Origin: Mizuhopecten yessoensis
Lineage: Eukaryota
DNA: 64,000 bases
Direction: 5' to 3'
Assembly: GCF_002113885.1 (NCBI RefSeq)
Contig: NW_018406397.1
Location: forward strand, 1,845,517-1,909,516
A program made the position numbers and the translations under genes. Positions 4,101 to 40,081 of this stretch are shown piece by piece. Under the pieces are notes generated by a model. That model saw nothing but the letters and a program-made list of their open reading frames with translations, did no database searches and had not been told where the DNA came from. The stretch's first letter is position 1, and every line of letters starts with the position of its first letter.

Positions 4101-5600
4101 AATCGTAATGATGCGCTATACTGTCAGTGTCAGAGTCTTCTGGTTGTTTTTCTGGGAACGTTCGATCAGATTGGGTACAACTTAATGATGCTTGCTGTAA
4201 GAAGCCATACTCATTGGTCGGTATCTTAATGTCTGATGCGTTGAAAAATCCTGTATTTGAAAGCATTCCATGTTGTAGCATGGCCTTGCAGCTATTTGTC
4301 ATCTCTTTCTCATCATAGTCTTCCATCTCTATTTTACCGTAAGCATTCTGACAACTGACCTTGTCCTTTGTTTCTATATTATCAGAACAGTTTGATGACA
4401 TATCGTTTTTTGTCGTGAAGCTGTTTCTGTTAGAAAGCAATAAATCCTGTTTATTATGTTTTCTTCGACCACCATTAGTTTCCGAATTCGCATCAAACTT
4501 GTATCCTTCTCTATTCGTTCGGTCAATTAGGGTGACTTCTTGCTGAATTCTATTTTCGATCCTTTCAGTATATGTACCTTGAGTACCTTCCCCCTGGTTT
4601 ATGCAGGTGTCTCTTTCACAATCACACAATGTATTTCTCTCTTTGTCGGTGTGAAATGTATCCATTGAGGAATAGGAATTGATATAATGCATACTTTTAG
4701 CAGCTCTCCGTTGTGCATTCATTCTGTTCGAAACGCCACAAAATGTAATATGCTCTTTTTGGCTGCTTGGTGCTAGAAATTTGTGATAGTCTTGCTCTAT
4801 TTCATTGACTGTGTTCTCTTCAATCGTGTTGAAGGCATTACATGCATTATCGGGGTCCCCTGATAGCCATTCTATGCCTGTTCTACGACCTCTCTCACCA
4901 CTGATGTCACACGTTGGACTATTGTTTGCTTTATCACCTGCTTCTCTTGAATGCGATACATTTTCCCCATTGCCATATTCGTCGTTGTTGCAGTCAACAC
5001 AGCTTTGACGAGAAAGGTCGATCATGCTCCTTTCATCCATTTTTGAGTCCTCTTTTTGTATCTCAGCAATAGTTACAATGTCTCCGACTTCAGTAATACA
5101 TACGTGTTGTTGGGAGGTTTCATTGCTTTTTCCTTGATAAGTCTTCTCAAAATTCGGCCATTCCCCATCTAAGATTGTTTTTGGACGAAATATTCTGTAA
5201 CATGATCTGCTTCTGTCGATCTCTGAGAAGTCTGACTTTTTACTGATGTCATTTTGCTTTCCTTCTATATAACTATACCTATGCTGTTTTTTCCTTCTGT
5301 TTTCATCTCCAAGACACAGTCTTTGCCTTGAAATTGTTCCCCAAATGCCAGCGTCAACAGCCGGTATCATATTGTTGATTGTGTATCTATCACCAATAGT
5401 TGATTCGTGCTGCTGTTCGTTGCTATATACTCCAACAAAACCAGGCCATGGTGTGTCATCATCGGAATAGGATTTTTCATAGACGACTGATGTCATGTCA
5501 GTATTGTGTATGTCTACTTCCTTAGTGTTACCGTTTTCATGCTGAACATTGCTTCTAATTTCACCTCCATGACGAGCTCCATGGTGGTGTGCAATTGAAC
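1154..5600 (-). CDS. Giant exon (~4.4 kb) of an uncharacterised Ser/Asp/Asn/Lys-rich tandem-repeat protein; frame-broken between ~2500 and ~3600
   Basis: Acceptor tttcag|GT at 5601/5600 is in phase 1 with the upstream exon and in frame with ORF 3595-5496. Donor TCA|GTAAGT at 1154/1153. ORFs 3595-5496, 2933-3580, 2722-3027 and 1073-2623 are pieces of one repeat reading frame. Confidence 0.65.
1450..3800. repeat. Coding VNTR: ~513-516-bp units plus rearranged 286-bp sub-units
   Basis: Recurrent blocks such as ttacagtccgaactgttcgaa and gtcagagtccactgg. Offsets 1854/2370 and 2558/2844. Confidence 0.9.
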
Positions 5601-6099
5601 CTGAAACGTCAGAGACGTTAAATATACTTTCTTAGCGAGGGAGAAAGTCACTTATGACTTTCCTCAAAAAACTGTTTGAGTTTGAATGCATTCGTACAAA
5701 TGCAATTGTTTTGATCTCAGAAACAGAAATATATTTGTGTTCAATTGTGAACCCTCTTTGTATGATATCATGCTATCAGTTACAGAAACATTTTCAACAG
5801 TATTTTAATAATATGCAGGGAACTTTATTCTTACTGGAAATAAAGCTAAAATCCAAAGAATTCAGATGGTTTATCCGAAATATTTCTTTTTGAAATTATG
5901 ACACTCTATCTTGTGATGCACTTGGTTTTGAAAAAGAATGTCCTAAGAAATTAATGAGAGACAGCTTCAATAGCTGAAAAAAGTTTGGAAATGCCGCTAT
6001 CGTCATGAAAATTGGCAGTACACTCCTTGTATGCCAATTTACCAACATAAACCGTGGTACCACATGGATAAACATGTTAAACTGCATTTCAGGTTTATT

Positions 6100-8687
6100 A
6101 TCTTAATTTCTGATACAATGTGATTGCTATCCCATCATAATTATTCCAACCAAGTTTGAATTATTTCCTGCAGAATAATGCACAAAACGTGCCAAAGAAG
6201 TGGCTAAATGTACCTTCACACTCACATGACTACAACTGGTTTTTTTAGAAGCGGTGAAAAAATCTCTGCAACTGAAAGGCCAAGGTGGCTTTATTGGATT
6301 TTCGGATCGGCTTATTACCTAAAAAATGCTGAACATTATTAACAAACTGTTCTAGTTTCTAAACTAACTTTCTATTAAATATATAGCACAAAAATTGTAC
6401 ACAATATAGATTTGATATTACATAAATTATTCGACAACAGGCCCATGGACCCTGACAGTCACATACAATGTAAAAGAAAAAGGTAATTTGTTGTTACAAA
6501 ATACAAAAGCACTTTAGGACCTTTCCATTCATGAAGAGTATTTGATGTTAACATTTCGGCCGTACCACTAAGACACCCGGGGGTAAGTTAGGGTATGTTT
6601 TTCTTATAAAATCAAATTTCAATATTATGATGATAATTCAAACCAAGTTTGAATTAAAAACAAAGGAGAAAAATTCGAAATATACCCAGAAATGCTAATC
6701 ATTAATATAAACTGTAGTATGGTTTACCCCCTCCGAATGGTAAATGGGTGACCGGGGGTATCGAAATTAGATCTTTTCCATCAATGAAGGGTATTTGATT
6801 CGAGCATATTTGGGTGTTACTTAGAAGATCGTTGATTTATTTTGCCAAATTGACCCCTTTTCAGCTTTGACTTCACCCCTCAGGCCCTGGGGATGAGTCA
6901 GGTTTTAAATTTTATATCACCAAACTGCAATCACATGTTGATAATTCCAACCAAATTTGAATTATTTGCCACCAAGAAAGTCAGCAAAAAATACCAAAAA
7001 GTGTTAATTCCCCTATATCAACTATAGTAACTTTATCCCCCTAGGAGCAATGGGTGACCTGGGGTTATGCAATTCACACTTTTGATAAAGTGCCTTAACA
7101 CTTATACACCCATGAAGAGTATTTGATTCCAGCGTTTACGAGTCTGAAGAAGAACATTTGCTGAACTTTTAGCCAGTTTGATCGCGATTGGCTAAAAATG
7201 TGAATTCCCTAGATAGATTACATAGTAAACGTTAATTTACTTTTCATTAAGTTCAACAGATTGCCTAGGGTTTATAAAATTAACATTCTAGATAATAGTC
7301 TGTATCGATACAGACCATTTTATTCTAGCACATCAAAGTCTGAGGAAGTAGTTTTTTGCCATTTTCAACCTTTGGACCCTGCCACTTCCAGCCAAATGGT
7401 GGGCCCAATTATAACTTTCTGATACCATCAAATTGCCATCTCATTATGATTATCAAAACCAGTTTGAATACTTCTTATTTCAGCTTAACTTTTACAAGAT
7501 AATGTGTTAATTGCTTTTCTTTTAAACAAGAATCCTAGGGGTACTGAGTCAACGGTCAACGGTCAACGGTCACCTGCGATCACCTGCGTTGTTATCAATA
7601 ACTGTTATTGTTGTTGTGATATTGTCAGAAAAAAGGGAAATAATAAAATGATTATATAAGGTAATATAGTAAATTTACCCCCCTTCCTAGATAGGAATGA
7701 AAAAAACATGGGTTGTAAAATTCACATTTCGTTAAAGCACTTTAGGAACTTTCAACCGATAAAGAGGATTCTATTCTAGGATATATGGGTCTTAAGAAGA
7801 AGATTGTTGAAATTTGAGCCAGTTAAACCCTTTTTGGCCCTGCGCCTCCGGCCTTAGGGTTGAGTAAGGTTCTAACTTTTCAAACCATCAAGCTGTAATC
7901 ACATGATGATAACTCCAACCAAGTTTGAATTATATCCCACAGAAAAGAAGCACGGAAAATAAACAGTTATACACAAAAGTGTTAATTCCCTACATAACTA
8001 TAGCCAAAGTTTCCCCTCTCCTGGTGGAAATGGGTGATGCGGGAGGTAATGAAAGTTACACTATTGACAAATCGTCTAAAGCAGTTTCCTTCAATGAACA
8101 GTACTTGTTTGCAGCATATCTGGGTCGAGAGAAGAATATTGGTAAAATTTGAGCCAATTGAAACCCTTTAGACCCCACTCCCATGCTCTTCGGATGAGTC
8201 ATACCATCAACTGCAATCACATGTTCTTAATTCCAACCAAGTTTGAATTACATCCCACAGAGAAGAAGCAAAATATATCCAAAAGTGTTAATTTCTTTAA
8301 TATATAAACTTAGCTCCCTCCTTCTGGGAGAATGAGTGACCGGGGACAATGAAATCCGCAATTTTTATCGGCATCTACAGCTTGATACCTTTCATCCATG
8401 AAGAGTTTTTGATTTCTGGATATCTAGGTCTAAAGGAGAAGATTGTTGCCAATTTGAACCTATTCGCCCCTGCCCCTCAGGCCCCTGGAAGGGTGGGGGT
8501 AGATCCATATAATTCACATATTTGACTTGCCTATGACCATTGAACCTTTTGTTGCAAATTTTAATTAGATTTGGTTAAGTGGTTATGGAGAAGAGGTCAA
8601 AAATGATATTCGGTTAAGGACACCAAACGATAGACAAAAGACAAAATTGCGTTAATAAAAATTGCGTTAGGTCAACAGAGACCTAAC
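6100..8687. mobile_element. Intronic cluster of non-autonomous Helentron/HINE-like repeats with internal ~300-bp tandem units
   Basis: Motif ccaaccaagtttgaatt (or close variants) recurs at ~6146, 6640, 6946, 7456, 7915 and 8233. aacaaga/acaacaggcccatgg-type starts at ~6434 and 7525. Terminal hairpin ttaggtc..gacctaa at 8667-8686. Family assignment is by resemblance to bivalve HINE architecture. Confidence 0.5.
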
Positions 8688-20298: not shown

Positions 20299-21991
20299 CG
20301 TGACCACTTCGTCTCTGACCACTTTATCTCCTCTTATCGATGACCACTTCGTCTCCTCTTATCAATGACCACTTTATCTCCTCTTAGCTATGAACACCTC
20401 ATCTCATCATAACAATGACAACTTCGTCTCCTCATAGCAGTAACCTCTTTATCTCCTCATAGCAATGACCACTTTATCTCCTCATAGCAATGACCACTTT
20501 ATCTCCTCTTATCAATGACCACTGTATCTCCTCATAGCAATGACCACTTAATCTCCTCTTATCAATGATTACTTTATCTCCTCTTAGCAATGACCACTTT
20601 ATCTCCTTTTAACAATGACCACTTTGTCTCCTCTTAGCAATGACCACTTCGTCTCCTTTTAGCTATGACCACTTTGTCTCCTCTTTGCAATGACCACTTT
20701 ATCTCATCATAGCAATGACCACTTTATCTCATTATAGCAATGACCACTTTATCTCCTCTAAGCAATAAGCACTTTGTCCCATCTTAGCAATGGCCACTTT
20801 GTCTCCTCTTTGCAATGACCACTTTTATCTCATCATAGCAATGACCACTTTATATCATTATAGCAATGACCACTTTATCTCCTCTTAGCAATGATCACTT
20901 TGTCTCATCTTAGCCATGACCACTTCGTCTCCTCTTAGCAATGACCACTTTGTCTCCTCTTATCAATGACCACTTTATCTCTTCTTAACAATGACCACTT
21001 CGTCTCCTCTTAACAATGACCACTTTATCTCCTCTAAGCAATGGCCACTTTATCTCCTCTTAGCAATGACCACTTTATCTCCTCTTATCAATGATCACTT
21101 TATCTCCTCTTAGCAATGACCACTGCATCTCCTCTTAGCAATGACCACTGTATCTCCTCTTAGCAATGACCACTGTATCTCCTCTTAGCAATGACCACTC
21201 AATCTCATCATAGCAATAACCACTGTATCTCCTCTTAGCAATGACCACTTAATCTCATCGTAGCAATGACCACTGTATCTCCTCTTATCAATGACCACTT
21301 TATCTCATCATAGCAATGACCACTTTGTCTCATCTTATCAATGACCACTTTATCTCCTCTTATCAATGACCACTTCGTCTCCTCTTAGCAATGACCACTG
21401 TATCTCCTCTAAGCAATGACCAATTTGTCTCCTCTTATCAATGACCACTTTATCTCCTCTTATCAATGACCAATTTGTCTCTTCTAAACAATGACCACTT
21501 CGTCTCCTCTTAGCAATGACCTCTGTATCTCCTCTAAGCAATGACCAATTTGTCTTCTCTTATCAATGACCACTTTATCTCATCATAGCAATGACCTCTT
21601 TGTCTCCTCTTATCAATGACAACTTTATCTCCTCATAGCAATTACCACTTTATCTCCTCTTATCAATGACCACTGTATCTCCTCTAAGCAATGACCACTT
21701 TGTCTCCTCTTATCAATGACCACTTTATCTCCTCATAGCAATTACCACTTTATCTCCTCTTAGCTATGACCACTTAATCTCATTATAGCAATGACCACTT
21801 TATCTCCTCTTATCAATGACCACTGTATCTCCTCCTATCAATGACCACTTATCTCCTCTTATCAATGACCAATTTGTCTCTTCTAAACAATGACCACTTC
21901 GTCTCCTCTTAGCAATGACCACTTTGTCTCCCTTAGCAATGACCACTTTGTCTACTCTTAACAATGACCACTCCTCTCCTCTTAGCAATTC
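20299..21991. repeat. 25-bp minisatellite, ~67 copies (aatgaccactttatctcctcttagc)
   Basis: Directly visible 25-nt period. Confidence 0.95.
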
Positions 21992-22814
21992 CACCGGCTA
22001 ATAAGTGTTTGATTAAGAACAATTGAAGGTAAATTGCGCTGCTGAATGTCTGTCCATTGTAGGATATGTGCCAGCGCCTGCAGTGATGAATGATGTTGTG
22101 ATGTGTTGTAGTTTGCCTACTGCCAAACAGCTGAACTTTACCCAACATCCTTATGCAATCCGTGTCTACAAAAACATATTTGTTATGCATTTGCATACGT
22201 ATGCATGCTGGCTTTGATATCCCAAATTCTCGACATTTCCGTAAAAAGGCAAATGATCCTGGCTTCATTTCGAAATGTTTGAAATAAAAAAAAATATACG
22301 AGTTCAAATTTCATATCCGTTTATATTTCAATTCATAGATATTTTGATAATACATCATTAGTCATGGGGCAATACTTCAAATCTTTAAACCATCTCTAGT
22401 ATCCTTGATCAGAGTATGTGTATAAATATATCACTTAGGTTAACATATTCTCCTTTTACTTTCTGCCGTCGTCTTACCTTCTTTTTCTTTCATCAGTCGT
22501 GAATAAAGTAACAACGCATGTATAAGTTTGTCTTTCTAGTCCGTTCTTGAGTAAAGATTATTAATTTTATAAATGAGTAAGGTTTATGGTCAAAGGGAGA
22601 TAATCGGCAGTTAAACATTGAATTTGGCATGGGATAGCAAAGAAAGACAGCACCTGTTATTTATATATATAAGTTAATATGTTTTACGTATGAGCGTAAA
22701 AGTGGAGGTTAAAAGGCTTTGAAATACTTCAGTCAATTGCACCAACACATTACCATTCTATTTTTAGATGGTTTCATACAAAACTGTATGTCCACCTAAG
22801 CTTATTATAAATAT

Positions 22815-25800
22815 TTAAATGATTCCATAATCACTATAACCCATCACACCTACTTACTGCTGGTCCATCTTTAAATGATACTATAACCACTATAACTCAT
22901 TACACCTACCTACTGCTTATCCATCTTTAACTGAGTCCATAACCACTATAACTCATTACACCTACCGACTGCTTATCCATCTTTAACTGAGTCCATAACC
23001 ACTATAACCCATTACATCTACCCGCTGCTGGTCCATCTTTAAATGATTCCATAATCACTATAACCCATTACACCTTTCTACTGCTAGTACATCTTTAACT
23101 GATTTCATAACCGCTATAATCCATTACATCTACCTACTGCTGGTCTATCTTTAAATGATTCCATAATCACTATAACCCATTACACCTACCCACTGCTGGT
23201 CCATCTTTAAATGATTCCATAAACACTATAACCCATTACACCTATCTACTGCTAGTACATCTTTAACTGATATCATAATCACTATAATCCATTAAACCTA
23301 CATACTGCTGGTCAATCTTTAAATGATTCCATAATAACTATAACCCATTACACCTACCCACTGCTGGTCAATCTTTAAATCATTCCATAACCACTACAAC
23401 TCATTACATCTACCCAATGCTGGTCATTCTTTAAATCATTCCATAATCACTGTAGCACATTACACCTACCCAATGCTGGTCCATCTTTAAATGATTCCAT
23501 AACCACTATAACCCACTACACCTACCTACTGCTGGTCCATATTTAAATGATTCCATAACCACTATAACCCACTACACCTACCTACTGCTGGTCCATATTT
23601 AAATGATTCCATAACCACTATAACCCATTACATCTACTCACTGCTGGTCCATATTTAACTGACTACATAACCACTATAACCCATTACATCTACCCACTGC
23701 TGGTCAATCTTTAAATCATTCCATAACCACTACAACTCATTACATCTACCCAATGCTGGTCATTCTTTAAATCATTCCATAATCACTGTAGCACATTACA
23801 CCTACCCAATGCTGGTCCATCTTTAAATGATTCCATAACCACTAAAACCCACTACACATACCTACTGCTGGTCCATCTTTAAATGATTCCATAATCACTA
23901 TATCCCACTACACCTACCCACTGCTGGTCAATCTTTAAATCATTCCATAATTACTGTAGCACATTACACCTACCCACTCCTGGTCAATCTTTAAATGATT
24001 CCATAAACACTGTAACCCATTACACCTACCCACTGTTGGTCAATCTTTAAATGATTCCATAACAACTATAACTCATTCCATCTACCCAATGCTGGTAAAT
24101 CTTTAAATCATTCCATAACCACTATAACTCATTACATCTACCCAATGCTGGTCATTCTTTAAATCATTCCATAATCACTGTAGCACATTACACCTACCCA
24201 CTCCTGGTCAATCTTTAAATGATTCCATAACAACTATAACTCATTCCATCTACCCAATGCTGGTAAATCTTTAAATCATTCCATAACCACTACAACTCAT
24301 TACATCTACCCAATGCTGGTCAATCTTTAAATCAGTCCATAACCACTATAACTCATTACATCTACCCAATGCTGGTCAATCTTTAAATCATTCCATAACC
24401 ACTATAACCCATTACACCTACCCACTGCTGGTCAATCTTTAAATCATTCCATAACCACTATAACCCATTACACCTACCCACTGCTGGACAATCTTTAAAA
24501 CATTACATAACCACTATAACACATTACACATACCCACTGCTGGTCAATCTTTAAATGATTCCATAATAACTATATCCCATTACACCTACCCACTGCTGGT
24601 CAATCTTTAAATCATTCCATAACCACTACAACTCATTACATCTACCCAATGCTGGTCATTCTTTAAATCATTCCATAATCACTGTAGCACATTACACCTA
24701 CCCACTCCTGGTCAATCTTTAAATGATTCCATAATCACTATAACCCATCACACCTACCTACTGCTGGTCCATCTTTAAATGATTCCATAAACACTGTAAC
24801 CCATTACACCTACCCACTGTTGGTCAATCTTTAAATGATTCCATAACAACTATAACTCATTCCATCTACCCAATGCTGGTAAATCTTTAAATCATTCCAT
24901 AACCACTACAACTCATTACATCTACCCAATGCTGGTCAATCTTTAAATCATTCCATAATCACTATAACATATTACACCTACCCACTGCTGGTCAATCTTT
25001 AAATGCTTCCATAATCACTATAACCCATTACACCTACCCAATGCTGGTCAATCTTTAAATCATTCCATAATCACTATAACATATTACACCTACCCACTGC
25101 TGGTCAATCTTTAAATCATTCCATAATCACTATAACATATTACACCTACCCACTGCTGGTCAATCTTTAAATCATTCCATAATTACTGTAGCACATTACA
25201 CCTACCCACTCCTGGTCAATCTTTAAATGATTCCATAATCACTTTAACAACCCATTACATCTCCCCTCTGCTGGTCAATCTTTAAATGATTCCATAATAA
25301 CTATATCCCATTACACCTACCCACTGCTGGTCAATCTTTAAATGCTTCCATAATCACTATAACCCATTACACCTACCCACTGCTGGTCCATCTTTAAATG
25401 ATTCCATAAACACTGTAACCCATTACACCTACCCACTGCTGGTCAATCTTTAAATCATTCCATAACCACTATAACTCATTACATCTACCCAATGCTGGTC
25501 AATCTTTAAATCATTCCATAACCACTATAACTCATTACATCTACCCAATGCTGGTCAATCTTTAAATCATTCCATAATCACTATAACATATTACACCTAC
25601 CCACTGATGGTCAATCTTTAAATGATTCCTTAATCACTTTAACAACCCATTACACCTACCCACTGCTGGCCAATCTTTAAATGATTCCATAACAACTATA
25701 ACTCATTCCATCTACCCACTGCTGGTCAATCTTTAAATCATTCCATAATCACTATAACATATTACACCTACCCACTGCTGGTCAATCTTTAAATGATTCC

Positions 25801-26127
25801 ATAATCACTATATCCCACTACACCTACCCACTGCTGGTCAATCTTTAAATGATTCCATAATCACTATAACCCACTACACCTACCTACTGCTGGTCCATAT
25901 TTAAATGATTCCATAACCACTATAACTCATTCCATCTACCCAATGCTGGTCAATCTTTAAATCATTCCATAACCACTATAATTTATTACATCTACCCAAT
26001 GCTGGTCAATCTTTAAATCATTCCATAATCACTATAACATATTACACCTACCCACTGCTGGTCCATCTTTAAATGATTCCATAACCACTATAACCCACTA
26101 CACCTACCTACTGCTGGTCCATCTTTA
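22815..26127. repeat. 56-bp minisatellite, ~59 copies (atgattccataaccactataacccattacacctacccactgctggtccatctttaa)
   Basis: Directly visible 56-nt period with recurring variant units. Confidence 0.95.
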
Positions 26128-27399: not shown

Positions 27400-30300
27400 A
27401 TGGCCGAATTGAAGAAAGTTGCCTGTGAAGCAATCGACAAAGTAGCATCGGAATTGAACAATATTAGTCAGGAATTATGGAAAAACCCAGAGCTGAACTT
27501 CAACGAGCACCATGCTCATTCGGTACTGACGGATTTCCTGGAGAATCAAGGATTTCACGTGGAGAGGAAATACAAACTCGACACAGCCTTCCGGGCCACA
27601 TTCGGTGACGACAGTGCAGGACCGCACGTGGCCGTGTTGTGTGAGTATGATGCACTACCAGAGATCGGCCATGCATGCGGACATAACCTGATAGCGGAAC
27701 TGGGCGTGGCAGCCGGCGTTGGGATAAAGGCCGCTATGGAAGCATCCGGGCAACCTATAGGGAAGGTAGGCGATGGGGATAAAATGAGATATAAGTTATT
27801 TGATTGGTCCAAGGTAAAAAAAAAACCATAGACTGATCGCTAAGGCTAATACCTGTCCTTTGAAGATCACAGAGGAGCATTACCCAACTTCAAAGCCAAT
27901 GAATTTCACCGTTACACGACCAAATTATTATTTTGATGTACATCAAATTAGTCTTCTCGTCTCATCCACAAGGTGGGTCAAACTTTGTCTATAATTTTGC
28001 TAGCTCCTGGAGAATCGAGGATGGTAATTATGTTGAGTGTTGAGTAAATGTTTGAAAAGTGATAATATAAACATATCCTGGCTAATCCGTCAAAATGTGA
28101 ATGTCAGATAGTTCGCTGCCAAACACTGAAATTAAAATTGTTTTGAAAGTGTATCATCAAAATCTGCACATTTTGTAACTATCAATATATTCACGCACGT
28201 TATGGATAAGAACAGCTTTTTATACATTGGTAATAGTAAAATTAGTTTTCGTTTGATATCTAAGTACGCGATAATTACAATATATTCCTGTTAAACGTTG
28301 TAAGATATAATCCCTTGCAAACCAATTTATCCCTTGAATCTTACTTGAATAAATAAGCATGTTGATGAATACATTGTAAGAAGCTCTCGCTGAGGCCTGG
28401 TATTCAGAACGTTAACATGAAATAGGTATACATTAAGTATGTCTATAACATGTAAGCAGTGTTCTATTAAGCAATACGAAGATTACATTGTTTATCAATC
28501 AGGTAGACTGTTTAACTAATGATTTGTTGATCAAATATGTTTACTCATGTACTAGTTTGTTTATCTGCTTATTTGATAATTTTTCAGTTTGAGTATCTAC
28601 TGTTTTTTCTTGATTCACCTAACTGTTGATATTCTAGCTTTTACTTAGTGGCTATTTTATCTACTAGTTGTGCCTGCTGGGTACACCGGCAGAGGAAGGT
28701 GGCAACGGGAAGGGGCACCTTTTAAAAAGCGGAGCTTTCAGCTATTTTGATGTTGCTATGATGTCACATCCGTTTGCATACGACGATGTCCGCCCAAGGA
28801 ATCTTATAGCAGTTGATTTGTACGTTAGCAATCATCTATAATACATAATATATTCTCATATTCGACCAAATATGATACTCTTCTATAAATCTTCCCCACA
28901 ACCGCAAACTTCTCTGGTGTCAACTGTCTTGTGTTTGTGTTGGCAGTCGTTCACATGTCAGCTTAGTCTCCATGGAAATGCTATCTTAAATCGTCCTTCC
29001 TTTTGCCACCTGTATTTTTACACACGCTCTAGCTAATCGTGCTGGGAACTCCGGCTGAAGAAGGAGGTGGCGGGAAAATTCTTCTCGATGACAAACGTGC
29101 ATTTGACAATATTGACGTTGCTATGATGTCACATCCGGCGCCAGGGGTTATATTGAAGCCAACAATGCTGGCCCGTCAGAGGTTTGGAAATTACAGCTTC
29201 TGTAGAATGCTTAAATAATTTTAGGCAACGGCTGCATGCAAATGATAACCAGCGAGTCCAAACTGCCTTGAATAAACCTTGTATCTTCTGCTTGCATTTA
29301 ACTTCACTATCAGATGGACATGCTGAGCATGGAACCCAAGATAGAAATATCCCTTCTTATTGTTAAAATTAGTAGTGAATAGAAATATCTCATCAAACAT
29401 TCTAAGGATGCAAGTGCAGTCGACACCTGTGAAGTTTATGTGAAACAGCTACGCATGACTTTCCTATTGATATCTTTATATTTTCCATAATACCCCTTCT
29501 TACCTACGCCTGCGTACAACTCATTCACTAACAATGGCTTCCGAAACAGCTTGTTGGCTTTTCCTTTCTGTTTCTTAACCTGGCCTACTCAAAATACCTA
29601 GAATGACCTCTTCACCGGTAACATATTTGATATGAAAGCTATTTTTGACAGATCACAGTTTTGGGGACACCAGATGAAGAAAACAAAGGAGGTAAACTTA
29701 TTTTGCTACAGAAAGGGGCATTAAGGGAAATTGACGTTGCTCTGATGTCTCATCCAGGACCGGGTGACTCTGTACTTGCAAACATGATGGCAGTAGATTG
29801 GTCAGTTTAAGAAACAGAATAATCATTCGTTTTGCATATAGTAATCATGCAAGCAAATACGATATCTTAATACTGCTTTTTTCTTATGTATGTATCCCTG
29901 CCATGATATATTCAGCAAAAAAGAAACGTTAACATCTCCTTTTGCTTACTACATATCCTTAAAGGTAAAATGGAGCAACGTTTTCGTGGTACAAAACATT
30001 GGGAACGCAATACCTACCACCATATTAATTAAAATTATTCAAGAGTAAATGTCTATGGTAGCCAAAGAGTTCCTACGGCGTTTTTGCAAATAACTGTGGA
30101 ATTACACCAGAGTCTTGTCAAAAAGGTAAATGTAATTCTTCTGTTACCCCATGACGACCGAAAACTCATAAAGAACAAATACGCATTTTCTTTATTCCGC
30201 AGCTGTCACAAGTGAGAGAAAGGGTTGTTGGAATGCTCCACCGTCCGCAAAGTGGCAGGGCCAGTGTTACGACCGCTATGGAAGACCGCCGGATACGGTT

Positions 30301-33300
30301 GTTATATCAGTATTATCGCATTGTTCCTGCGAGTGAAACCGCGAGGACATTTCTTGGTCGTCGTGCAATCGCTCCAACTAACCGAAATCGTTTGAAATAG
30401 TCCAGTCAAAAGCACAGCACCCATTTTTAAACATCATCAACGTATAAGCTGCTTTTAATGGACCCGTACACACCGTCGTTGGTTTCATCAATGAAACAAA
30501 GCTGATTTTACAGATTAATCACGATTTCGCTTGTCACATGGTAACTGGAGACGTAGAGTCGTGAAATGGTCTGGGGTGGTATTTGTGTTGGTAGCCGTGT
30601 ACAATTTATATATTGAATTGAAATGGGACGCGTTATCAAGGCGAAATTTCGAGGACATTATTAATCCCGTTTTTTCAACTTCATGCACTGGCATTATTTT
30701 CAACAAGATCATGCGACAGTGCATGACAGTCAAGTCAACAGCAAAACACAAATGGTCAGGTGTAAATATTCCGTCTTTATCACTCAACCGTTGCCAGTGG
30801 AGCGCATTCGGGATACTCTCGGGCGACCTCTCGGGATACTCTCGGGCGACCTCTCGGGATACTCTCGGGCGACGCATTAGGACAGTTTAATGCGACGACA
30901 CTGTTACGTTATATTCGGCATAAACGATGGTCATACACGGTTCTTAACACGTGATTTATTAAACCCGACTTACATTTCATTTACGTCGAATACAATCATT
31001 TCACAGTGGCGTTTTCTCTAGATCTGTGATAAATCAATAACAGCATTTCAAAGAATAAAATGATACCGAATTAAATGTATCTACAGCAAAATGGACAAAT
31101 TAGCTGAACGTTATGTTTAGTATCTACGTATTCTCTGTTTTTCATATTAACAAATATATTGTAAACACTTGCTTTTTTAATCAGAACACCCAGAGTGATG
31201 TAAAGATAGTTTTCCTTTTGTTAATAATATATCTTATTTATCGCTTAATAATTGAAACTTCATACAGCCAGCTGCACTGTTTGAATGTATTTTACAGTTC
31301 AAGATAAAGTTATTTATCTACATTTATTGCTGTCGTGTTCATAAGTTGAAGTTTATATTACCATTATAAGTGTGATGCGCTTTTCCTAGTGGTACAGATA
31401 GTTTCAAAATGTGTTCAGTATTAAAGAAGTTGACAGTGTATTACAATAATGCAGCTACACACCAAATAAGTTGGTAAACGAAGTACACAAATATATCTAT
31501 CATAACTATGTAAGTTATGTAGGTTAGACATAATTTAGGTTCAAATACCTCTGTGACCCTCGGTTTTGCCCCACATTATTTATCACGGGTGGGTCAATTC
31601 CTTCCAACATATATGCAAAGTCTATTCTATTTGACATTACAACACCACAAAACATAAAAAAGGGTAGGGAAAATTCCTCGTAAACTCATTTACTGAACTT
31701 TATATACCTATAATCATTATAGACACCGTCTGTTTCAAGGGTAACTGTGACGTATAAAGGTAAGGCCAGTCACGCCGCTGCATTTCCTTGGGAGGGAATC
31801 AACGCGCTCGATGCAGCAGTCACGTGTTACCAGACCGTATCGTGCATGCGCCAACAGATGAAGCCGACATGGAGAGTCCACGGTAGTATTACACATTTAG
31901 ATTCCATCACTTGAAAGATTAACGGCACAGCATACCTTTCTCGTAATTATTTGCCGAGCAATGCTTATTTGTCCACTGACCGTTGTGGGCAATATATAGA
32001 TCTTGGCATTATGTTAGTCAGAGGGTCAATCACTCGGCAATATACGAGCAAAATGACGATGTGCTTCCGGTTTAAAATGGAGTTTCAATAAGTGTTTCTT
32101 TTAAATGTTCTGAAGGAATAATCACAAAAGGTGGTGTCAGGCCAAATATCATACCGGAAGAGGCTGAAATGGAATTTTACATCCGGGCACCAACCAGGGA
32201 GGAGCTTAATGTGCTACGGGAAAAAGTCATTGGTTGTTTTGAAAGTGCGGCCACCGCAACAGGATGCAAGGTATTGCTAAATGTTTTGCTATTCACATTA
32301 TTTAGAGGAACGGTTTTGTTTTATAGCAATACTTATGTCTTGCTAGCTGAATGAACTGCCAATTTCCGACACGGACGTAATCATCTCTTTATTATGACGT
32401 TCGACTTTGCATAATCAAGTGTTAGTCATATCCTGGTGAAAGCTTCATTATTAATTTTATCAATTTCTGTCATATCTGGTCTAAGTTTATAAATTTGTGG
32501 GCTACATGACAAAATAGAAAATATCCACTGCAACCATTCCAAAGTTTAACATTTGTGCTGATAAAATATAAAATATGAATATATCTGGGGGTTTATTAAA
32601 TCACACGACGATGTTTAGAAATAAAATGTGAATATGTAAGTATTGTTGGTTAAAACAGTTACATGCTTCTTGTTAACTTTGCTAGGAAATTACAAGAAAC
32701 TGCTTATGATCAAAAATAGAACAGAACATTTTGAAATTTTATTTCTGCTTTTCAATTTACTCCAATGAGTCACGGATAACAGACTTCAAACTTTTTACAG
32801 ACACCTTTGGATTTTCAGCGATTCTTATACATAACAGTTAGATAGAAAATAAGGATATATAAAATAAAATAAGCATTCTATGTATATGTAAACCAATGAA
32901 GGATAAAGTATTTTCAATGTTGTCAGAGGTTTTATCGCACAGATTTTTTATTCAATCATTTTTGGAACTGGCACTTTTTCACTGGACAATATTATGTAAA
33001 AAAGATAGTATAGAAAATTATCCATGTATCAGATAGCACCATATGCTAAATTCGTCACCCGGAATAATAATGGAATTCTATTTATCCACCTCTCCACAGG
33101 TAGAGTACGACTTTTCAGAAATGCCATATCTGAATGTCATCAATAACGAAGCTCTGGCCTCTTCATTTGAGACGAACGCAAAGGAATTAGGGCTGGACTT
33201 CAAGGAACACACGATGCCTACAGGCAATGTTCCCCTTGGCTCCACAGACATGGGGAACGTGTCGTATGTTGTTCCAAGTATCCATCCTTTCTTTTACATA

Positions 33301-33853
33301 GGAACAGATGAGGTCAACCATACTAGAGGCTTCACTGGCGCTACAGGTAATGTTAAATGGCGGATAATAGTTGGTGAACCGCTTTGAGACGACCTACGAA
33401 CTAGGTTGTGAGAAAGCGGTATATAAGAACCTGGTTATTATTATTATTATTATTATTGTTTAGGTCTCTACATTTACAGATCCAAATTTCTTAAGGAAAA
33501 GAAATGTTCATCTCCAAATACGCATTGTATTTTTCTGTTTGATCTGAACGAAGTTTTGCATCGCTGTATCCAGATATATATTGTGTTTATATATTTCTCA
33601 CCGATCTTAACGCATACTTTTAATATGTTCTTTTAATTTTCACAATAATTATTATTTTAATGTTTCTCTATTTGATCAATCTAGTTAACATTTTTCAAAA
33701 ATTCTTTTCCCGAAAGGTGCCCCTGCCGCCCAGCCGTACACCATCATACAAGGGAAAGCAATGGCAATGACAGCTATCGACGTATTCACTAACAAAGAAC
33801 TTTTTCAGAAAATCAAAACCGAATTTGACAACGAACCACAGAGGAAGGCTTAA
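27400..33853 (+). CDS. PM20D2: Peptidase M20 domain-containing protein 2 (ACY1L2-type dipeptidase/amidohydrolase), 398-399 aa
   Basis: Exons 27400-27765, one of 2a/2b/2c, 31740-31882, 32116-32270, 33100-33346, 33717-33853. All introns are GT-AG and phase-consistent. Motifs: [15 protein letters not shown], GTPx[43 protein letters not shown]. Confidence 0.93.
28668..28819 (+). CDS. PM20D2: PM20D2 alternative exon 2a (152 nt): [50 protein letters not shown](L)
   Basis: ctactag| ... |gtacgt; phase 0 in, phase 2 out; no stops. Confidence 0.85.
29033..29181 (+). CDS. PM20D2: PM20D2 alternative exon 2b (149 nt): [49 protein letters not shown](R)
   Basis: ctctag| ... |gtttgg; phase 0 in, phase 2 out; closest to the canonical [11 protein letters not shown]. 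Confidence 0.88.
29652..29800 (+). CDS. PM20D2: PM20D2 alternative exon 2c (149 nt): [49 protein letters not shown](W)
   Basis: ttgacag| ... |gtcagt; phase 0 in, phase 2 out; no stops. Confidence 0.85.
29907..31231 (+). mobile_element. Old degenerate Tc1-like transposon in the intron between PM20D2 exon 2c and exon 3
   Basis: Imperfect TIRs tatattcagcaaaaaagaaac / gttttccttttgttaataatata. Transposase remnants [35 protein letters not shown]. Internal 23-bp x3 tandem repeat at 30809-30873. Confidence 0.75.
33375..33458 (+). mobile_element. 5'-truncated retroposon 3' tail (L2-like) with (TTA)n; second copy at ~50073-50145
   Basis: gtgaaccgctttgaga..aagcggtatataaga..tattatt is present at both sites. 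Confidence 0.55.
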
Positions 33854-35169: not shown

Positions 35170-36070
35170 TAGCGCTGATAAAATAGCAATATGGTATATG
35201 TGGCTATGTCATGCGCGGATGATACGATGATCTTATGTATGAATTAAACATGAATATGAGATTATCGTCTTTAAAGCCAGTTACTTGTTTTGTTTGATCA
35301 TGCTTAAGTTTGTTATTTCATCAGAAAAAAATCATGTGTTTCAATGAAGGATTTTGGAGACAGATTTCTTATTCCTTTATAGGATTAATTTAAAAATTGG
35401 ATACACTGGACGTATACCCAGGTATTGGATAGTTCCAGATCGCCAGTACTGAATGAATTTCTGTTGTTTCTTGCGTTGAAAACGACTTTCCAGATACGCT
35501 GTTATAAAATCGTCAGGAACAAAGTGTTTGCTTCTTCATTGGAGACGAACGCAAGGGAGTTGGGGCAGGAGTTCAGAAAAAAGCCTTCTGTTTCAAGAAA
35601 ACACTCAATGGGGCCAACAGTCATCGGGAACGTGTCGTATTTTGTACCCAGTATCCTTCAGATGAAGTCAACCACACTAGTGGCTTCACTGACGCTACAT
35701 GTAGAGTTTTAAATGAACATATAAATACAGATCAGAATCTTCTTTTGAAATAGAATGAGATTGAGACAACGTCCTTCCGAATATACATTGGTTTTCTATT
35801 GTGTTCTGAAAGAGCTGTTGCAATGCTGTATCCAGGTATATATATCCTTTTGGTTTTTTCTCTCTCAGCGTAAACTTTTAATACATTCTTTGTATTTTTT
35901 CATAATAAATATTGACACACAGTTTCTTTTTTCTGATATCTAATCTGGTTTATATTTTTTTTAAATGGAAAAAAATATAATGTTTTCACGAAAGGTGCCC
36001 CGTCCGCCCAGCAGTACACCATAACATAAGGGAAAGCAATGGCAATGACAGCCATCGACGTATTCAAACC
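35170..36070 (+). pseudogene. PM20D2 partial pseudogene copy B (intron 4 piece, exon 5, exon 6)
   Basis: FASSLETNARELG..GNVSYFVPSI with a frameshift. Exon 6 homolog at 35994-36070 has CAA changed to TAA. Confidence 0.85.
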
Positions 36071-36604
36071 AAATATGTCTGCCACAGTCAAAATCACTCG
36101 TGCGTACTAGCCTTGTGAATTCTATCATACGATTTGGTGCGTGAAACTACAAACAAAAAACCATAACGAATAGCTTAAATATTATATATTTACAAGATGC
36201 TTGGACAATGACAAACATTTGCTTTTAATACTAAAATGTTATGTTTCCCAAATGAAGGATAACAAAAATCCATCTGGGAAGATCTATAAAAAAACGTTTT
36301 TGAACCTCGTGAGTTTTGAAAACAATAAGAACGTTTTTCCCTTTGGGATTCCATAAATGCTCAATATTTTACTTCGCTGCGTATATATGGCTTTGGACAC
36401 TGCCTTTCGAGCCACATTCGGTGACGACAGCGCAGGTCCGCACGTGGCCGTGTTGTGTGAGTATGATGCACCACTAGAGATTGGCCATGCATGCGGACAC
36501 AACCTGATAGCGGAACTGGGCGCGGATGCTGCTGTTGGTATCAAGGCCGCGCATTGTTTCCAAGAATCGTCTTGAGATTAATACGAAAAACAAATTAGAT
36601 CGGC

Positions 36605-36996
36605 AGGGACGTAACAAGGCGTACGCACGGACGCACGGGCTTCCACGTAATTTTTTCAAGTATACTTTTAACAAGGATAACATTGTAGAACTTTATGTGA
36701 TAAACTTTAACAACTCATATAATCCTGGGCCCTCAGTGAATTCATTATCTCATTTATTGTTTCTTTTATTGACTATTTAAAGAAAAGGTTCCTTGTTCAT
36801 ATGGAACTAATTATTACGCATTTTATAAATAAAATACTACAAGCCAAATATGAAAATGATAGGTATTTTATGTCACAAACTGCACCAGAATGGGTTCCAG
36901 ATTCCGAAAAAATCTCGCCCCCCCCCCCCCCCCCCCCCAACTCCGCGCTTCGCGCTTCGTATGCTTCCACATACTCATGGTCCTGGTTACGCCCCT
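36605..36996. mobile_element. MITE with cagggacgtaacaagg / cctggttacgcccctg termini and an internal poly-C tract
   Basis: Imperfect 16-bp TIRs; atcgg on both flanks. Confidence 0.55.
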
Positions 36997-37044
36997 GATC
37001 GGGATGTATTATGGCGCAGTGCGGCTCGTCATTTCACACGCAGA

Positions 37045-37165
37045 GGTCGGATGGCGTACAAGATAATGCACTCGCCGTTCACCAAGTCGACCGGGGTTCG
37101 ATTCTCCGATCAAACGTGTAATTGTATATTAGGTCACTATCCTGAGCACGTAGGTTTCCTCAGTT
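37045..37165 (+). mobile_element. tRNA-derived SINE head fragment
   Basis: B-box-like ggggttcgattc followed by cacgtaggtttcctc; no complete cloverleaf. Confidence 0.45.
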
Positions 37166-40081
37166 GTTTATATATATATATTTCATAACTGTTGTAAACT
37201 TAGGTTAATACAGATGAATTTCGAATCATAGCCGTATATTTCACAGAGAAAAACTCAAATCACTTAAATAATTGTATTCCCTCATAACCGACAAACGTTT
37301 CCTAATTCCTCATTTTATGTAATACGATTTGAAAGTTATAGCAATTTACACACATTACCTAAATATTGAGTGATCATGGTTTATATATTCCAAGCAATTA
37401 ACGTATTGATGAGTAAAACTATCCAAAAGTTGTGACGCAACAATGACTGTGATCTTGACATCACAACACTCATCACATTTAACTTACCCTTTATTGACAG
37501 CATATCAACAAAGTCGGGGCATAAATCACCTTTGATCTACCTCTAATACATCTAGACATTTGTTATCACATTTTTATTTCAACTCAAAATTGAATAGATA
37601 AATGAGGGCATGAATTTACTACACGTCACAAACGATGATTATCCAAGGTGACAACCCAGACTTGGTTTATTCAGTACTTTTGTCATCTGTTAAACACTAA
37701 CTTAGGATATATTTGTCATACGAATAAGCAGATACTATTTATAGATATTCAAATGTATTGAAGATTGTACGCTACATGATCGATTGACATGCTCGTTGTG
37801 ACCATAGCATCCAGTTTATATATAAATATATATCATATCAGTGAATGATTAACATCTTATCACCGTTTTATTAATTTACTAAACTTTTGGATTATTATCT
37901 AAGAATATGTCTTTTATCTATTAATTTGATGATCAATAGATTTGATGATCAATTGATTTGTTTATCTATTCATTTTGTCATCTTTGTTTATTGGTCATAA
38001 TATGTACCAGTTTGTTCATCTTCTTATGTTTGTTGAATAATTAAATTGACCATCTACTATTTCTTCTCTATAAACCAATGTATCTACTAGTGGTTTACAT
38101 TTACAGGAGGAGTGTGGCAACAGGAAGTATCTATCATCTTATTTCTAAAAAGCGGAGTTCTGATGTCTGTCAGTTGAGTTTTATATCAGTGAATTTTATT
38201 TTAGCTATCAGCTATGATATAGCATTTTCTTAACTCCAGTCACAATCAGATATGGGACTCATGTAAACAGCTTCATTACAATCGTTTACTTCGCTGGTGT
38301 CAACTGTCTTGTATTTACGTATAAGGTCATCGTTTCGCCTATGTCATTGTCAATATCTAACCGCTGATATATCTTGATGTGCAGAGGTCTTCAACGTCCG
38401 ATATTCCCTTGGCAATTAAATTAATTAATAATAAAGGCTTTTATATACACCAAACAGTATTTTAAAAAGGGATCTAGAAAAGTTTGGATTTTAGGCTTTC
38501 TGTCACACCGGTCTCTTCTAACCTTTCATTCATATAATTATTGTTTTATTAATGTAATAAAACTTTTTGTTTGGACACTTCCTTCCCTTTTCCATATAGA
38601 TTTGTATTCCTGCTATAGCTAAAAGTGCTAGGAACCCCAGCGGAAAAAAGTGGGAGGGAAAATTATTCTCATCGACAAACACGTATTTGACAATGTTGAC
38701 GTCGACCAGAAGATTTGAGGCCAACAATGCTTGCCTGTCAGGGGTATGGGAATACAACTTCTTTAAATTAAGAAGCTTAGATATATACATATAATAACGT
38801 TTTCTCGAAAACCACATTTTTTATTTTATAGCTGATGTTAAATGTTAAACTTACTTATCTATATCCTTACGTTTCCCTCCGCTCCGTCTACTTGTCACAC
38901 TACTGAAGTTCGTCCTATCAATGATGAAAAAGTAAAGGGATAATTATTTGTTAACTAATTTATTGAACACTTGCGCGTCATCACCAGGACGAGCACTACC
39001 GCCTGTTTCCAGTTTAACCGTGACGTATAAGGATAAGGCCAGTCACGCCACTGCATTTCCCTGGGAGGGAATCAACGCGCTGGATGCGTACCAGACCGTA
39101 TCGTACATGCGGCAACAGATGAAGCCGGCATGGAGAACCCATGTAGTACATCACAAATAAATAAATAAATGGAAATCTCATTTATCTTGTTAGTGGACAT
39201 AAGTTCGACTTCCTCTTCTGTTTATATTTTTGTTTACAAAAATTTGTATAAAAATCCCCTGGTTACATATCACTTGATTTAAAATGCAATTTTAATGTGT
39301 TTCTAGTTATTTCAAATAATCACCTTACATCAGCGTACAACAATATATCTTTCCCATTTTTTATACAAAAAGGAATAATAAAAAATGGTGGCTTGAAAAC
39401 ATCTATTATACCGGAAGATGCTGCACTGGAATTCTTCATCCGGGCACCGAGCAGGGCAGAGCTAAATGTGTTACGAGAAAAGATGATTGGTTGTTTTGAA
39501 AGTGCAGCAACAGCAACTGGATGCAAGGTAACAGTGAACGATAATGTCCAATAGGTATATTGTCGACATGAAATACAGCCATTATTTCAGACACACGTTT
39601 ATTTCTAATTGGTACTGAACTTTGACCAGCAAAGATAAAATTAGCATTGTAGAATTACCTTATACCAAGGATGTAATAATTTCTGATCACTGATGCGTCA
39701 ACATGGAATACTTAGTTGGTTTCTTGTAATCCCTTCTCCACGGGTTGATTACGACTTATCAGAAATTTTATGTCTAAGTGTCATAAAAAACTAAACTCTA
39801 GCCTCCTCATTTGAGCCCAACGCAAAGGAATTGGGGCTGGACTTCAAGGAACACGACCAGTATGCAGACACCCTGGGGTCCACAGATAAGGGAAACGTGT
39901 CGTTTGTTGTACTGTACCCAGTATCGATCCGTATTTCCATTTCGGAACAGATGAAGTCAACCTTATTAGAGGCTTCACTCTCGCTACAGGTAGATGTTGA
40001 ATGGACAAATCTCAGCTGTTTAAGTTTTAAACCAACATATTAAAATGTTGTGTTCTGAATTTATTGGTGTCCCGTTTTTAA

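Follow-up and report, generated by a model that had tools for sequence, protein, structure and literature searches.

Tandem duplicated exons that substitute for one another are catalogued for human genes (PMC9741552, PMC8373072), and a model of such substitution based on RNA structure is available (PMC6071210). According to the accessible text of Tan et al. 2020 (PMC7434440), the tandem exons 6a and 6e of coq-2 are spliced in a mutually exclusive manner in helminths, annelids and molluscs; exon choice was shown experimentally to change what the enzyme acts on, and the variant exon is conserved across phyla. In the oyster alternative oxidase (AOX) gene, as the accessible text of Liu & Guo 2017 (PMC5589949) describes it, exon 10 is duplicated: the conserved copy prevails in normal conditions, and the derived one, with changes around key functional sites, rises under stress. 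Here we compare with these systems a gene for a PM20D2-like dipeptidase of the scallop Mizuhopecten yessoensis. It lies in a stretch of 64,000 nucleotides (nt) of contig NW_018406397.1 (RefSeq assembly GCF_002113885.1, positions 1,845,517 to 1,909,516, forward strand), called the window below, and coordinates given without a locus name refer to it. The gene has six exons, with three homologous alternative copies of exon 2 (E2a, E2b and E2c) between exon 1 and exon 3. We consider it quite probable that these copies are three selected, mutually exclusive catalytic exons, with E2b as the default and E2a and E2c giving conditional isozymes of the scallop PM20D2.

Structure of the exon 2 cluster

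Direct reading and translation show that E2a, E2b and E2c contain no stop codon, that AG stands before and GT after each of them, and that each starts in phase 0 and ends in phase 2. The copies are adjacent, separated by introns of 213 and 470 nt, and have similar lengths, equal phases and splice sites of their own (Table 1). Compared with tblastn inside the window, they share 50-66% amino-acid identity with E-values of 1e-9 to 1e-11, which is far beyond chance. The original prediction for this locus, made from the letters of the DNA alone, had described three homologous exons of these lengths, ends and phases, and reading, translation and tblastn confirm it; the motifs GTPxEE and MSHP, which it held to be kept in all copies, are present in E2a, E2b and E2c.

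The length of every copy leaves a remainder of two when divided by three, so that any copy number other than one shifts the reading frame to an early stop. Exon-by-exon translation in the shifted phases places this stop within 1-24 codons when zero, two or three copies are included. Because these combinations hit early stops, inclusion of a single E2 exon alone keeps the frame and yields a protein, the full model product having 398 amino acids (aa), or 399 aa with E2a, as had been foreseen. The first base of exon 3 finishes a split codon, which encodes a different residue with each copy. These observations support the view that the three copies form a genuine mutually exclusive cluster in an orthologue of PM20D2.

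The RefSeq entries of M. yessoensis, retrieved by cluster look-up, are named "peptidase M20 domain-containing protein 2-like" and comprise three isoforms: X1 (XP_021355348.1, 399 aa) is the sole carrier of E2a, X2 (XP_021355349.1, 398 aa) of E2b and X3 (XP_021355350.1, 398 aa) of E2c. All exon translations from the window are exact substrings of these isoforms, and the E2 segment starts at residue 123 in each. Searches in the window were run exon by exon with no spliced joining, and full-length work used the RefSeq database proteins. Region-restricted protein searches with E2a and E2c, in a collection whose 90% clusters collapse isoforms, returned known RefSeq scallop proteins only, plus one weak match of E2a in the cnidarian Clytia.

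Table 1. Exons of the PM20D2-like gene and candidate RNA stems in the window
Feature	Position	Strand	Description
Exon 1	27400..27765	+	ATG to GK/gt, 122 codons; open reading frame with GT donor; identical to the start of RefSeq X1/X2/X3; includes the HACGHN Cys/His metal motif
Exon 2a (E2a)	28668..28819	+	152 nt; a-type, ...SHPF.YDD; in RefSeq isoform X1 (399 aa); codon completed by exon 3: Leu
Exon 2b (E2b)	29033..29181	+	149 nt; b-type; in RefSeq X2; joints in three RNA runs; codon completed by exon 3: Arg
Exon 2c (E2c)	29652..29800	+	149 nt; c-type, GTPDEE..GGKL.LLQK; in RefSeq X3; codon completed by exon 3: Trp
Exon 3	31740..31882	+	begins the M20 dimerisation/lid domain; acceptor AG before 31740
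Exon 4	32116..32270	+	RNA joints on both sides; exact RefSeq match
Exon 5	33100..33346	+	RNA joint from 32270; RefSeq match
Exon 6	33717..33853	+	stop TAA 33851-33853; RNA contig loose ends match 33719-33742
Stem 1	5' arm 29565..29586, 3' arm 29799-29820	+	encloses E2c, covers E2c donor
Stem 2	5' arm 28906..28926, 3' arm 29417-29437	+	18/21 paired; putative loop-out of E2b

Conservation and selection across scallops

Synonymous divergence between the three copies is saturated (proportion of synonymous differences, pS, 0.63-0.80; of nonsynonymous differences, pN, 0.35-0.38), which makes the duplication an old one. Orthologues of the three exon types are conserved in Argopecten, Pecten and Ylistrum. 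Argopecten irradians has them in the same a-b-c order (locus L015, 4788-4939, 15455-15603 and 17580-17728), and the Pecten orthologues include E2a at 3983-4134 of locus L017 and E2c at 6077-6225 of locus L016. Splice-site contexts are conserved per type (..TGATTT/gtacgt, ..TCAGAG/gtttg, ..GATTG/gtcagtt).

In a tree of 40 exon 2 segments each type forms a clade across the scallop genera (support 100/100, 99/85 and 100/99), with long stems (~1.0) to a and c and a short one to b, the deeper relations being unresolved with 51 columns. Identity amounts to 76-83% inside types and to 47-51% across types; 14 of the 50 positions are invariant in all types and species, and another nine are fixed inside each type and differ between types. 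E2b is nearest to the ancestral consensus. In evolutionary terms, E2b would thus stand closest to the ancestor, and E2a and E2c would be derived copies kept by selection.

Ratios of nonsynonymous to synonymous divergence (dN/dS), calculated pairwise between orthologous exons by the Nei-Gojobori method, are 0.12-0.23 for E2a, 0.10-0.14 for E2b and 0.16-0.31 for E2c; the pooled constitutive exons gave 0.04-0.05 and exon 4 alone 0.09-0.23. All E2 ratios lie significantly under the neutral expectation (Fisher test, one-sided, p 2e-7 to 4e-3, dS 0.4-1.0), so selection maintains each of the alternative exons across species. Judged from these comparisons, the cluster is kept by selection since before the compared scallop genera diverged, and in our model the array is older than the radiation of the scallop family. 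Old and selected variants had been suspected from the divergence of the copies within M. yessoensis, and the type clades across genera together with ratios of 0.10-0.31 bear this out; on the proposed check against relatives, E2a and E2c have orthologues in the scallop genera and values (0.12-0.31) significantly below 1.

These data bear on the view of E2a and E2c as relics of old exon duplications that are out of use, with E2b constitutive and RefSeq isoforms X1 and X3 computational by-products. The closeness of E2b to the ancestral consensus would suit such a history. Copies with this degree of synonymous saturation have nevertheless kept, in four genera of scallops, open frames, AG/GT ends and the catalytic residues, and the ratios between orthologous a and c exons lie significantly below 1. 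RefSeq, moreover, has independent models of a/b/c or b/c isoforms for four species of scallop: isoforms X1, X2 and X3 of Argopecten irradians use a, b and c, respectively, and in both Ylistrum balloti and Pecten maximus isoform X1 is b and isoform X2 is c.

What happens to a copy that is truly unused can be seen in Pecten maximus, where LR736842.1 carries at 6.11-6.13 Mb two adjacent PM20D2-like genes (L017 followed by L016) that share common ancestry with the window gene. Gene 1 (XP_033739662, 399 aa) has an intact a-type exon, a b-type copy with a 1-nt deletion and a c-type copy with a 4-nt deletion. Gene 2 (isoforms X1/X2) has b and c intact and the a-type missing. The frameshifts in gene 1 imply that unused copies decay on this time scale, which argues against relics in the other scallops, and since each type is intact in one of the two genes, all three are retained somewhere. 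On the evidence of the two genomic sequences, the exon 2 repertoire is partitioned after gene duplication in Pecten.

Active site and predicted function

All three isoforms match the Peptidase_M20 catalytic domain (PF01546, 34.7-36.9 bits against a cut-off of 24.6) and the M20_dimer or lid domain inserted in it (PF07687, 39.7-42.1 bits against a cut-off of 21), and isoform X2 also matches TIGR01891 (206.5 bits, cut-off 153.75); single E2 exons are too short for Pfam scoring. The closest solved structure found with phmmer is human PM20D2 (7YH4, "Xaa-Arg dipeptidase"; E 3.3e-120 over query residues 4-393), and the second-closest is HmrA (3RAM, 9e-64). The E2a and E2c isoforms were modelled with AlphaFold, each reaching a mean predicted local distance difference test score (pLDDT) of 94.7, with means of 86-97 over ten-residue blocks of the E2 segment. 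In Foldseek the E2c model aligns to 7YH4 with a template modelling (TM) score of 0.91 and a root-mean-square deviation of 2.0 A at 48% identity. The identification as PM20D2 from the DNA alone is well borne out by the match to 7YH4 and by the TM score. As an orthologue of PM20D2 the scallop protein belongs to the M20D metallo-amidohydrolases. Hydrolysis of dipeptides of the beta-alanyl/GABA-Lys/Orn/Arg kind (GABA, gamma-aminobutyric acid) would be the expectation for the predicted enzyme at the level of the family.

Residues C93, H95, E131, E132, H156 and H346 do not vary among 40-41 homologues or between the exon versions a, b and c, and we take them, from general knowledge of M20 enzymes, to be the metal ligands and the general base. 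E131, E132 and H156 lie in exon 2, in agreement with the prediction that this segment carries a Glu-Glu pair and a His. In the models the E2 segment runs through a strand (122-128), the E131-E132 loop, a helix (136-142) and two short strands around H156 into a linker; the lid domain begins at about residue 172, and the last 14 E2 residues run into this lid/dimerisation domain. Exon 2 would hence encode a strand-loop-helix-strand unit with the catalytic Glu, the metal Glu and the metal His, plus the lid linker, a content from which three isozymes would follow that are predicted to be catalytically competent and to differ around the active site and the hinge.

A large share of the differences between types falls in the last 14 residues and in the surface helix 136-142. 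Residues next to the active site are affected as well: A130, which immediately precedes the catalytic Glu and does not vary in 40 a-type, b-type and outgroup sequences, is replaced by Asp in all exons of the c-type, and G133 and G134, which come right after the metal Glu and are near-invariant elsewhere, are replaced in the c-type. The a-type has G135N plus Gly-His following a conserved Lys. Because c changes neighbours of catalytic residues, an effect on substrate or kinetics is plausible.

The same distribution of changes can be read differently, in that the isoforms are real and act on the same substrates, the exon swap altering stability, temperature or pH optimum, metal preference, or the dynamics of lid and dimer. 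This is possible and deserves to be kept in mind, although we think it rather unlikely. The entry of the last 14 E2 residues into the lid/dimerisation domain, and the concentration of type-specific divergence there and in the surface helix, speak for it, and a precedent is available in oyster AOX, whose derived duplicated exon is stress-induced according to the accessible text (PMC5589949). The replacement of A130 and G133/G134 in c, first-shell neighbours of the active site, speaks against it. We favour conditional isozymes: E2a and E2c would most likely be called on in certain tissues, at certain stages or under certain conditions, and would change substrate preference or kinetics.

Exclusion of the exon copies

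Two candidate RNA stems were found in the cluster (Table 1). The free energy of stem 1 is -26.8 kcal/mol (RNAduplex), which none of 300 shuffles reaches, and no counterpart of this stem is conserved in Argopecten or Pecten. For stem 2 the whole segment folds with z = -2.05, and a repeat search found no sequence-conserved counterpart in Argopecten or Pecten. Pairing of E2a with the E2b acceptor is not above shuffles. The two introns that separate the copies exceed the length at which steric hindrance would act, and all splice sites are of the GT-AG type. Competing stems, steric hindrance and incompatible spliceosomes are accordingly not seen here as a conserved means of exclusion. Such a conserved mechanism is not a defining property of every mutually exclusive cluster. 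As the stems are not conserved and the E2a pairing does not exceed shuffles, we claim no docking/selector mechanism. In our model the second coding exon is a tandem array of the diverged copies a, b and c from which splicing would take exactly one, frameshifted transcripts presumably being removed by nonsense-mediated decay.

Transcript evidence and alternative explanations

RNA contigs of three runs (X1, X2 and X4), from three independent studies, were mapped to 27400-33399; a further run, X24, barely covers the gene. In runs X1, X2 and X4 exon depth is ~8-60 times the intron depth, and all inter-exon joints are GT..AG. Joints from 27765 to 29033, 29181 to 31740, 31882 to 32116 and 32270 to 33100 occur in all three, and the junction of exons 5 and 6 is confirmed by a contig loose end (Table 1). 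Read cautiously, these contigs make E2b the default exon, with E2a and E2c either minor in the sampled RNA or missing from it. Splicing of one copy at a time is seen for E2b in the three RNA runs; E2a and E2c appear spliced in RefSeq models only, here and in three other scallops. Junction mapping, which the original prediction had proposed, thus found the E2b junctions in three studies and those of E2a and E2c in none. Its claim that one gene makes three enzymes holds with regard to the cluster, its age and the selection acting on it; a symmetrical use of the three copies does not agree with RNA in which E2b alone appears.

Several points weigh against the use of all three exons as proposed here. 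No joint E1-E2a, E2a-E3, E1-E2c or E2c-E3 is present in the contigs of the three RNA runs, in which the depth of E2a and E2c equals only that of the surrounding introns, so that their use in M. yessoensis would be argued from RefSeq models and selection. These RNA data are assembled contigs, which drop rare variants, and come from unknown tissues; the missing joints therefore do not prove absence. Transcript look-ups with the exact isoform proteins gave no record, even for the abundant isoform X2, and are hence uninformative. No conserved RNA structure that would enforce exclusion was found in the scallops compared, and exclusion through the reading frame plus nonsense-mediated decay includes a decay step that we infer from the frame. 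Each of the frameshifts in Pecten is taken from a single assembly. Finally, altered substrate or kinetics across the isoforms, plausible as it is, would be a deduction from residue changes.

That the contigs of three studies contain E2b junctions alone fits unused relics, as does the position of the E2c donor inside a strong stem in M. yessoensis. Against the long conservation of E2a and E2c set out above, however, we judge it improbable that they are relics.

Alternatively, the extra copies might be regulated "poison" exons that tune the level of the enzyme through decay and contribute no new enzymes. Double inclusion always leads to one of the early stops described above, and intron depth near E2a is relatively high in the RNA contigs; both points speak for such regulation. 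A poison exon, however, has no need for a conserved protein sequence, and a and c are under purifying selection with type-specific fixed residues. Joints of the a-b, b-c or a-c kind, moreover, do not occur in the contigs of the three runs, and in Pecten a separate gene has E2a as its one working exon 2. Taking these together, we regard poison exons as very unlikely and retain selected alternative exons with E2b as default.

Some details of the RNA contigs are recorded here in their own right. In run X2 an intron contig (27825-28820) stops exactly at the E2a donor, with depth falling from 41 to 4 in the a-b intron; the corresponding contigs of runs X1 and X4 continue past 28820. The contig end could be a graph branch from rare E2a splicing, or it could reflect the nearby polymorphisms at 28748 and 28834. 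The contigs show 28748 T>C in E2a to be synonymous (Phe) and 29723 A>T in E2c to change Leu to Phe, and these two polymorphisms are too few to judge constraint. Several indels and polymorphisms are present at 30200-30900, in the intron between E2c and exon 3.

Exon 2 in other genes and animals

The genes of Mytilus edulis and Crassostrea virginica have a single exon 2. Two tandem 149-nt exons with AG/GT ends are present in Apostichopus japonicus (locus L020, 4385-4533 and 6840-6988), for which RefSeq also lists a two-exon version: isoforms X1 and X2, both of 405 aa, differ in the exon 2 segment only. The caenogastropod Batillaria attramentaria has three tandem 149-nt AG/GT exons (locus L021, 4016-4164, 4615-4763 and 5602-5750), which are far more alike than the scallop copies. 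In the deposited Batillaria models (231 and 447 aa) two copies are read one after the other, probably a modelling error. The distribution suggests that exon 2 was duplicated repeatedly, or else that copies were homogenised in some lineages. RefSeq "isoforms" of Haliotis, which differ at scattered positions, were not counted as an exon 2 swap.

An array common to the paralogues in the scallop genome was considered and rejected, as the paralogues C5587 and C4983 have one E2 each. Just upstream of exon 2 of C5587 lies a tiny decayed fragment (LTVLGSPAEGG*; locus L013, 4592-4545), possibly left over from an exon duplicate that has since been lost. Tandem copies of the PM20D2-like gene in a decayed state also occur in the window just downstream of the intact one, at 35482-36066 and 36396-39989. 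The former is a fragment with exon 5, intron 5 and exon 6. The latter extends from a truncated exon 1 (36396-36550) through exon 5 (39744-39989), with an in-frame deletion in exon 3 and a stop in exon 5; it includes a lone frameshifted E2b-like remnant (38619-38741) and a remnant of the a-b intron (38247-38316). Remnants of E2a or E2c were not found in these decayed copies.

From the occurrences in distant animals a wider proposal may be made: the exon with the catalytic Glu pair would be a recurrent target of tandem duplication and mutually exclusive splicing, the copies having arisen or been kept alike separately in scallops, Batillaria and Apostichopus, the scallop isozymes a, b and c would differ in dipeptide or metabolite-repair specificity, and the chemistry of c would be altered beside the catalytic base (GTPAEE to GTPDEE). 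We put this forward tentatively, as an idea that is less likely than not to be right. If true, it would describe a natural cassette system that retunes the active site of one enzyme, and Pecten would be an example of cassettes sorted out into separate genes.

Genomic surroundings

The M. yessoensis assembly comprises 988 Mb in 82,659 contigs. Upstream of the gene the window contains two minisatellites (20316-21989 and 22810-26127; a 25-bp unit in 67 copies and a 56-bp unit in 59 copies), because of which GC skew is strongly negative at 20-26 kb. In intron 1, contig depth at 27800-27999 is very high in all four runs, X24 included, with many short non-canonical "joints" from 27819/27877 to 27942/27955 around a palindrome at 27918-27961. 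This segment looks like a dispersed transcribed short repeat, similar to a miniature inverted-repeat transposable element (MITE), and not like splicing of the gene. In the intron between E2c and exon 3, overlapping open reading frames of ~120 aa occur on both strands at 30200-30900, a region that is probably a transposon remnant; a CTCGGGCGACCTCTCGGGATACT-like short tandem repeat lies at 30800-30870.

Comparison with known systems

Full-text literature searches found no paper that describes the PM20D2 exon cluster. The original prediction had called the arrangement undescribed, which holds for the searchable literature; for the databases it does not, and novelty was overstated, because RefSeq already lists isoforms X1, X2 and X3. 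As a discovery the cluster therefore has limited weight, the general phenomenon being well known too. To our knowledge, mutually exclusive exon clusters that swap active-site residues of an enzyme are rare and informative. They indicate where in a fold specificity is retuned by evolution while the gene stays single, and the combination of splicing in scallops, a gene split in Pecten and separate duplications in distant animals would amount to a clean natural experiment that sets splicing against gene duplication. The scallop gene also offers three ready-made variants for probing the choice of substrate in PM20D2.

As far as we know, the vertebrate PM20D2 gene has a single copy of this exon. 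Human PM20D2 (7YH4, 8ZEI, 8XZC, 8ZEL; Xaa-Arg or cytosolic beta-alanyl-lysine dipeptidase) shares with the scallop protein the family, the fold and the HACGHN, GTPAEE and HP motifs; the scallop gene differs from it in having three exon versions, of which c alters residues beside the catalytic Glu pair.

The closest parallels in print are coq-2 and oyster AOX, both enzymes of relevance to molluscs in which a tandem duplicated exon alters residues close to functional sites. With coq-2, as the accessible text presents it (PMC7434440), the scallop gene has in common tandem homologous exons in a metabolic enzyme. In contrast to the scallop cluster, coq-2 has two such exons and encodes a membrane prenyltransferase, and the functional switch that was demonstrated there would in the scallop be deduced. 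The parallel with oyster AOX, again within the accessible text (PMC5589949), lies in a default copy, comparable to E2b, beside a derived one, comparable to E2a and E2c. The oyster differs in that the last of its exons is duplicated, in two copies, by alternative use of 3' exons, and stress switching was measured in it. By analogy, the AOX pattern would fit a default E2b with conditional E2a and E2c.

Tandem exon substitution in general resembles the scallop cluster in its homologous exons of equal length and phase, with one per transcript, and in being ancient and selected. Unlike in the RNA-structure model, a conserved docking/selector arrangement was not found among the scallops compared, and exclusion seems to be based on the reading frame. 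A further feature that sets the scallop cluster apart from tandem exon substitution in general is that exon 2 appears to have been duplicated or homogenised separately in Batillaria and Apostichopus as well.

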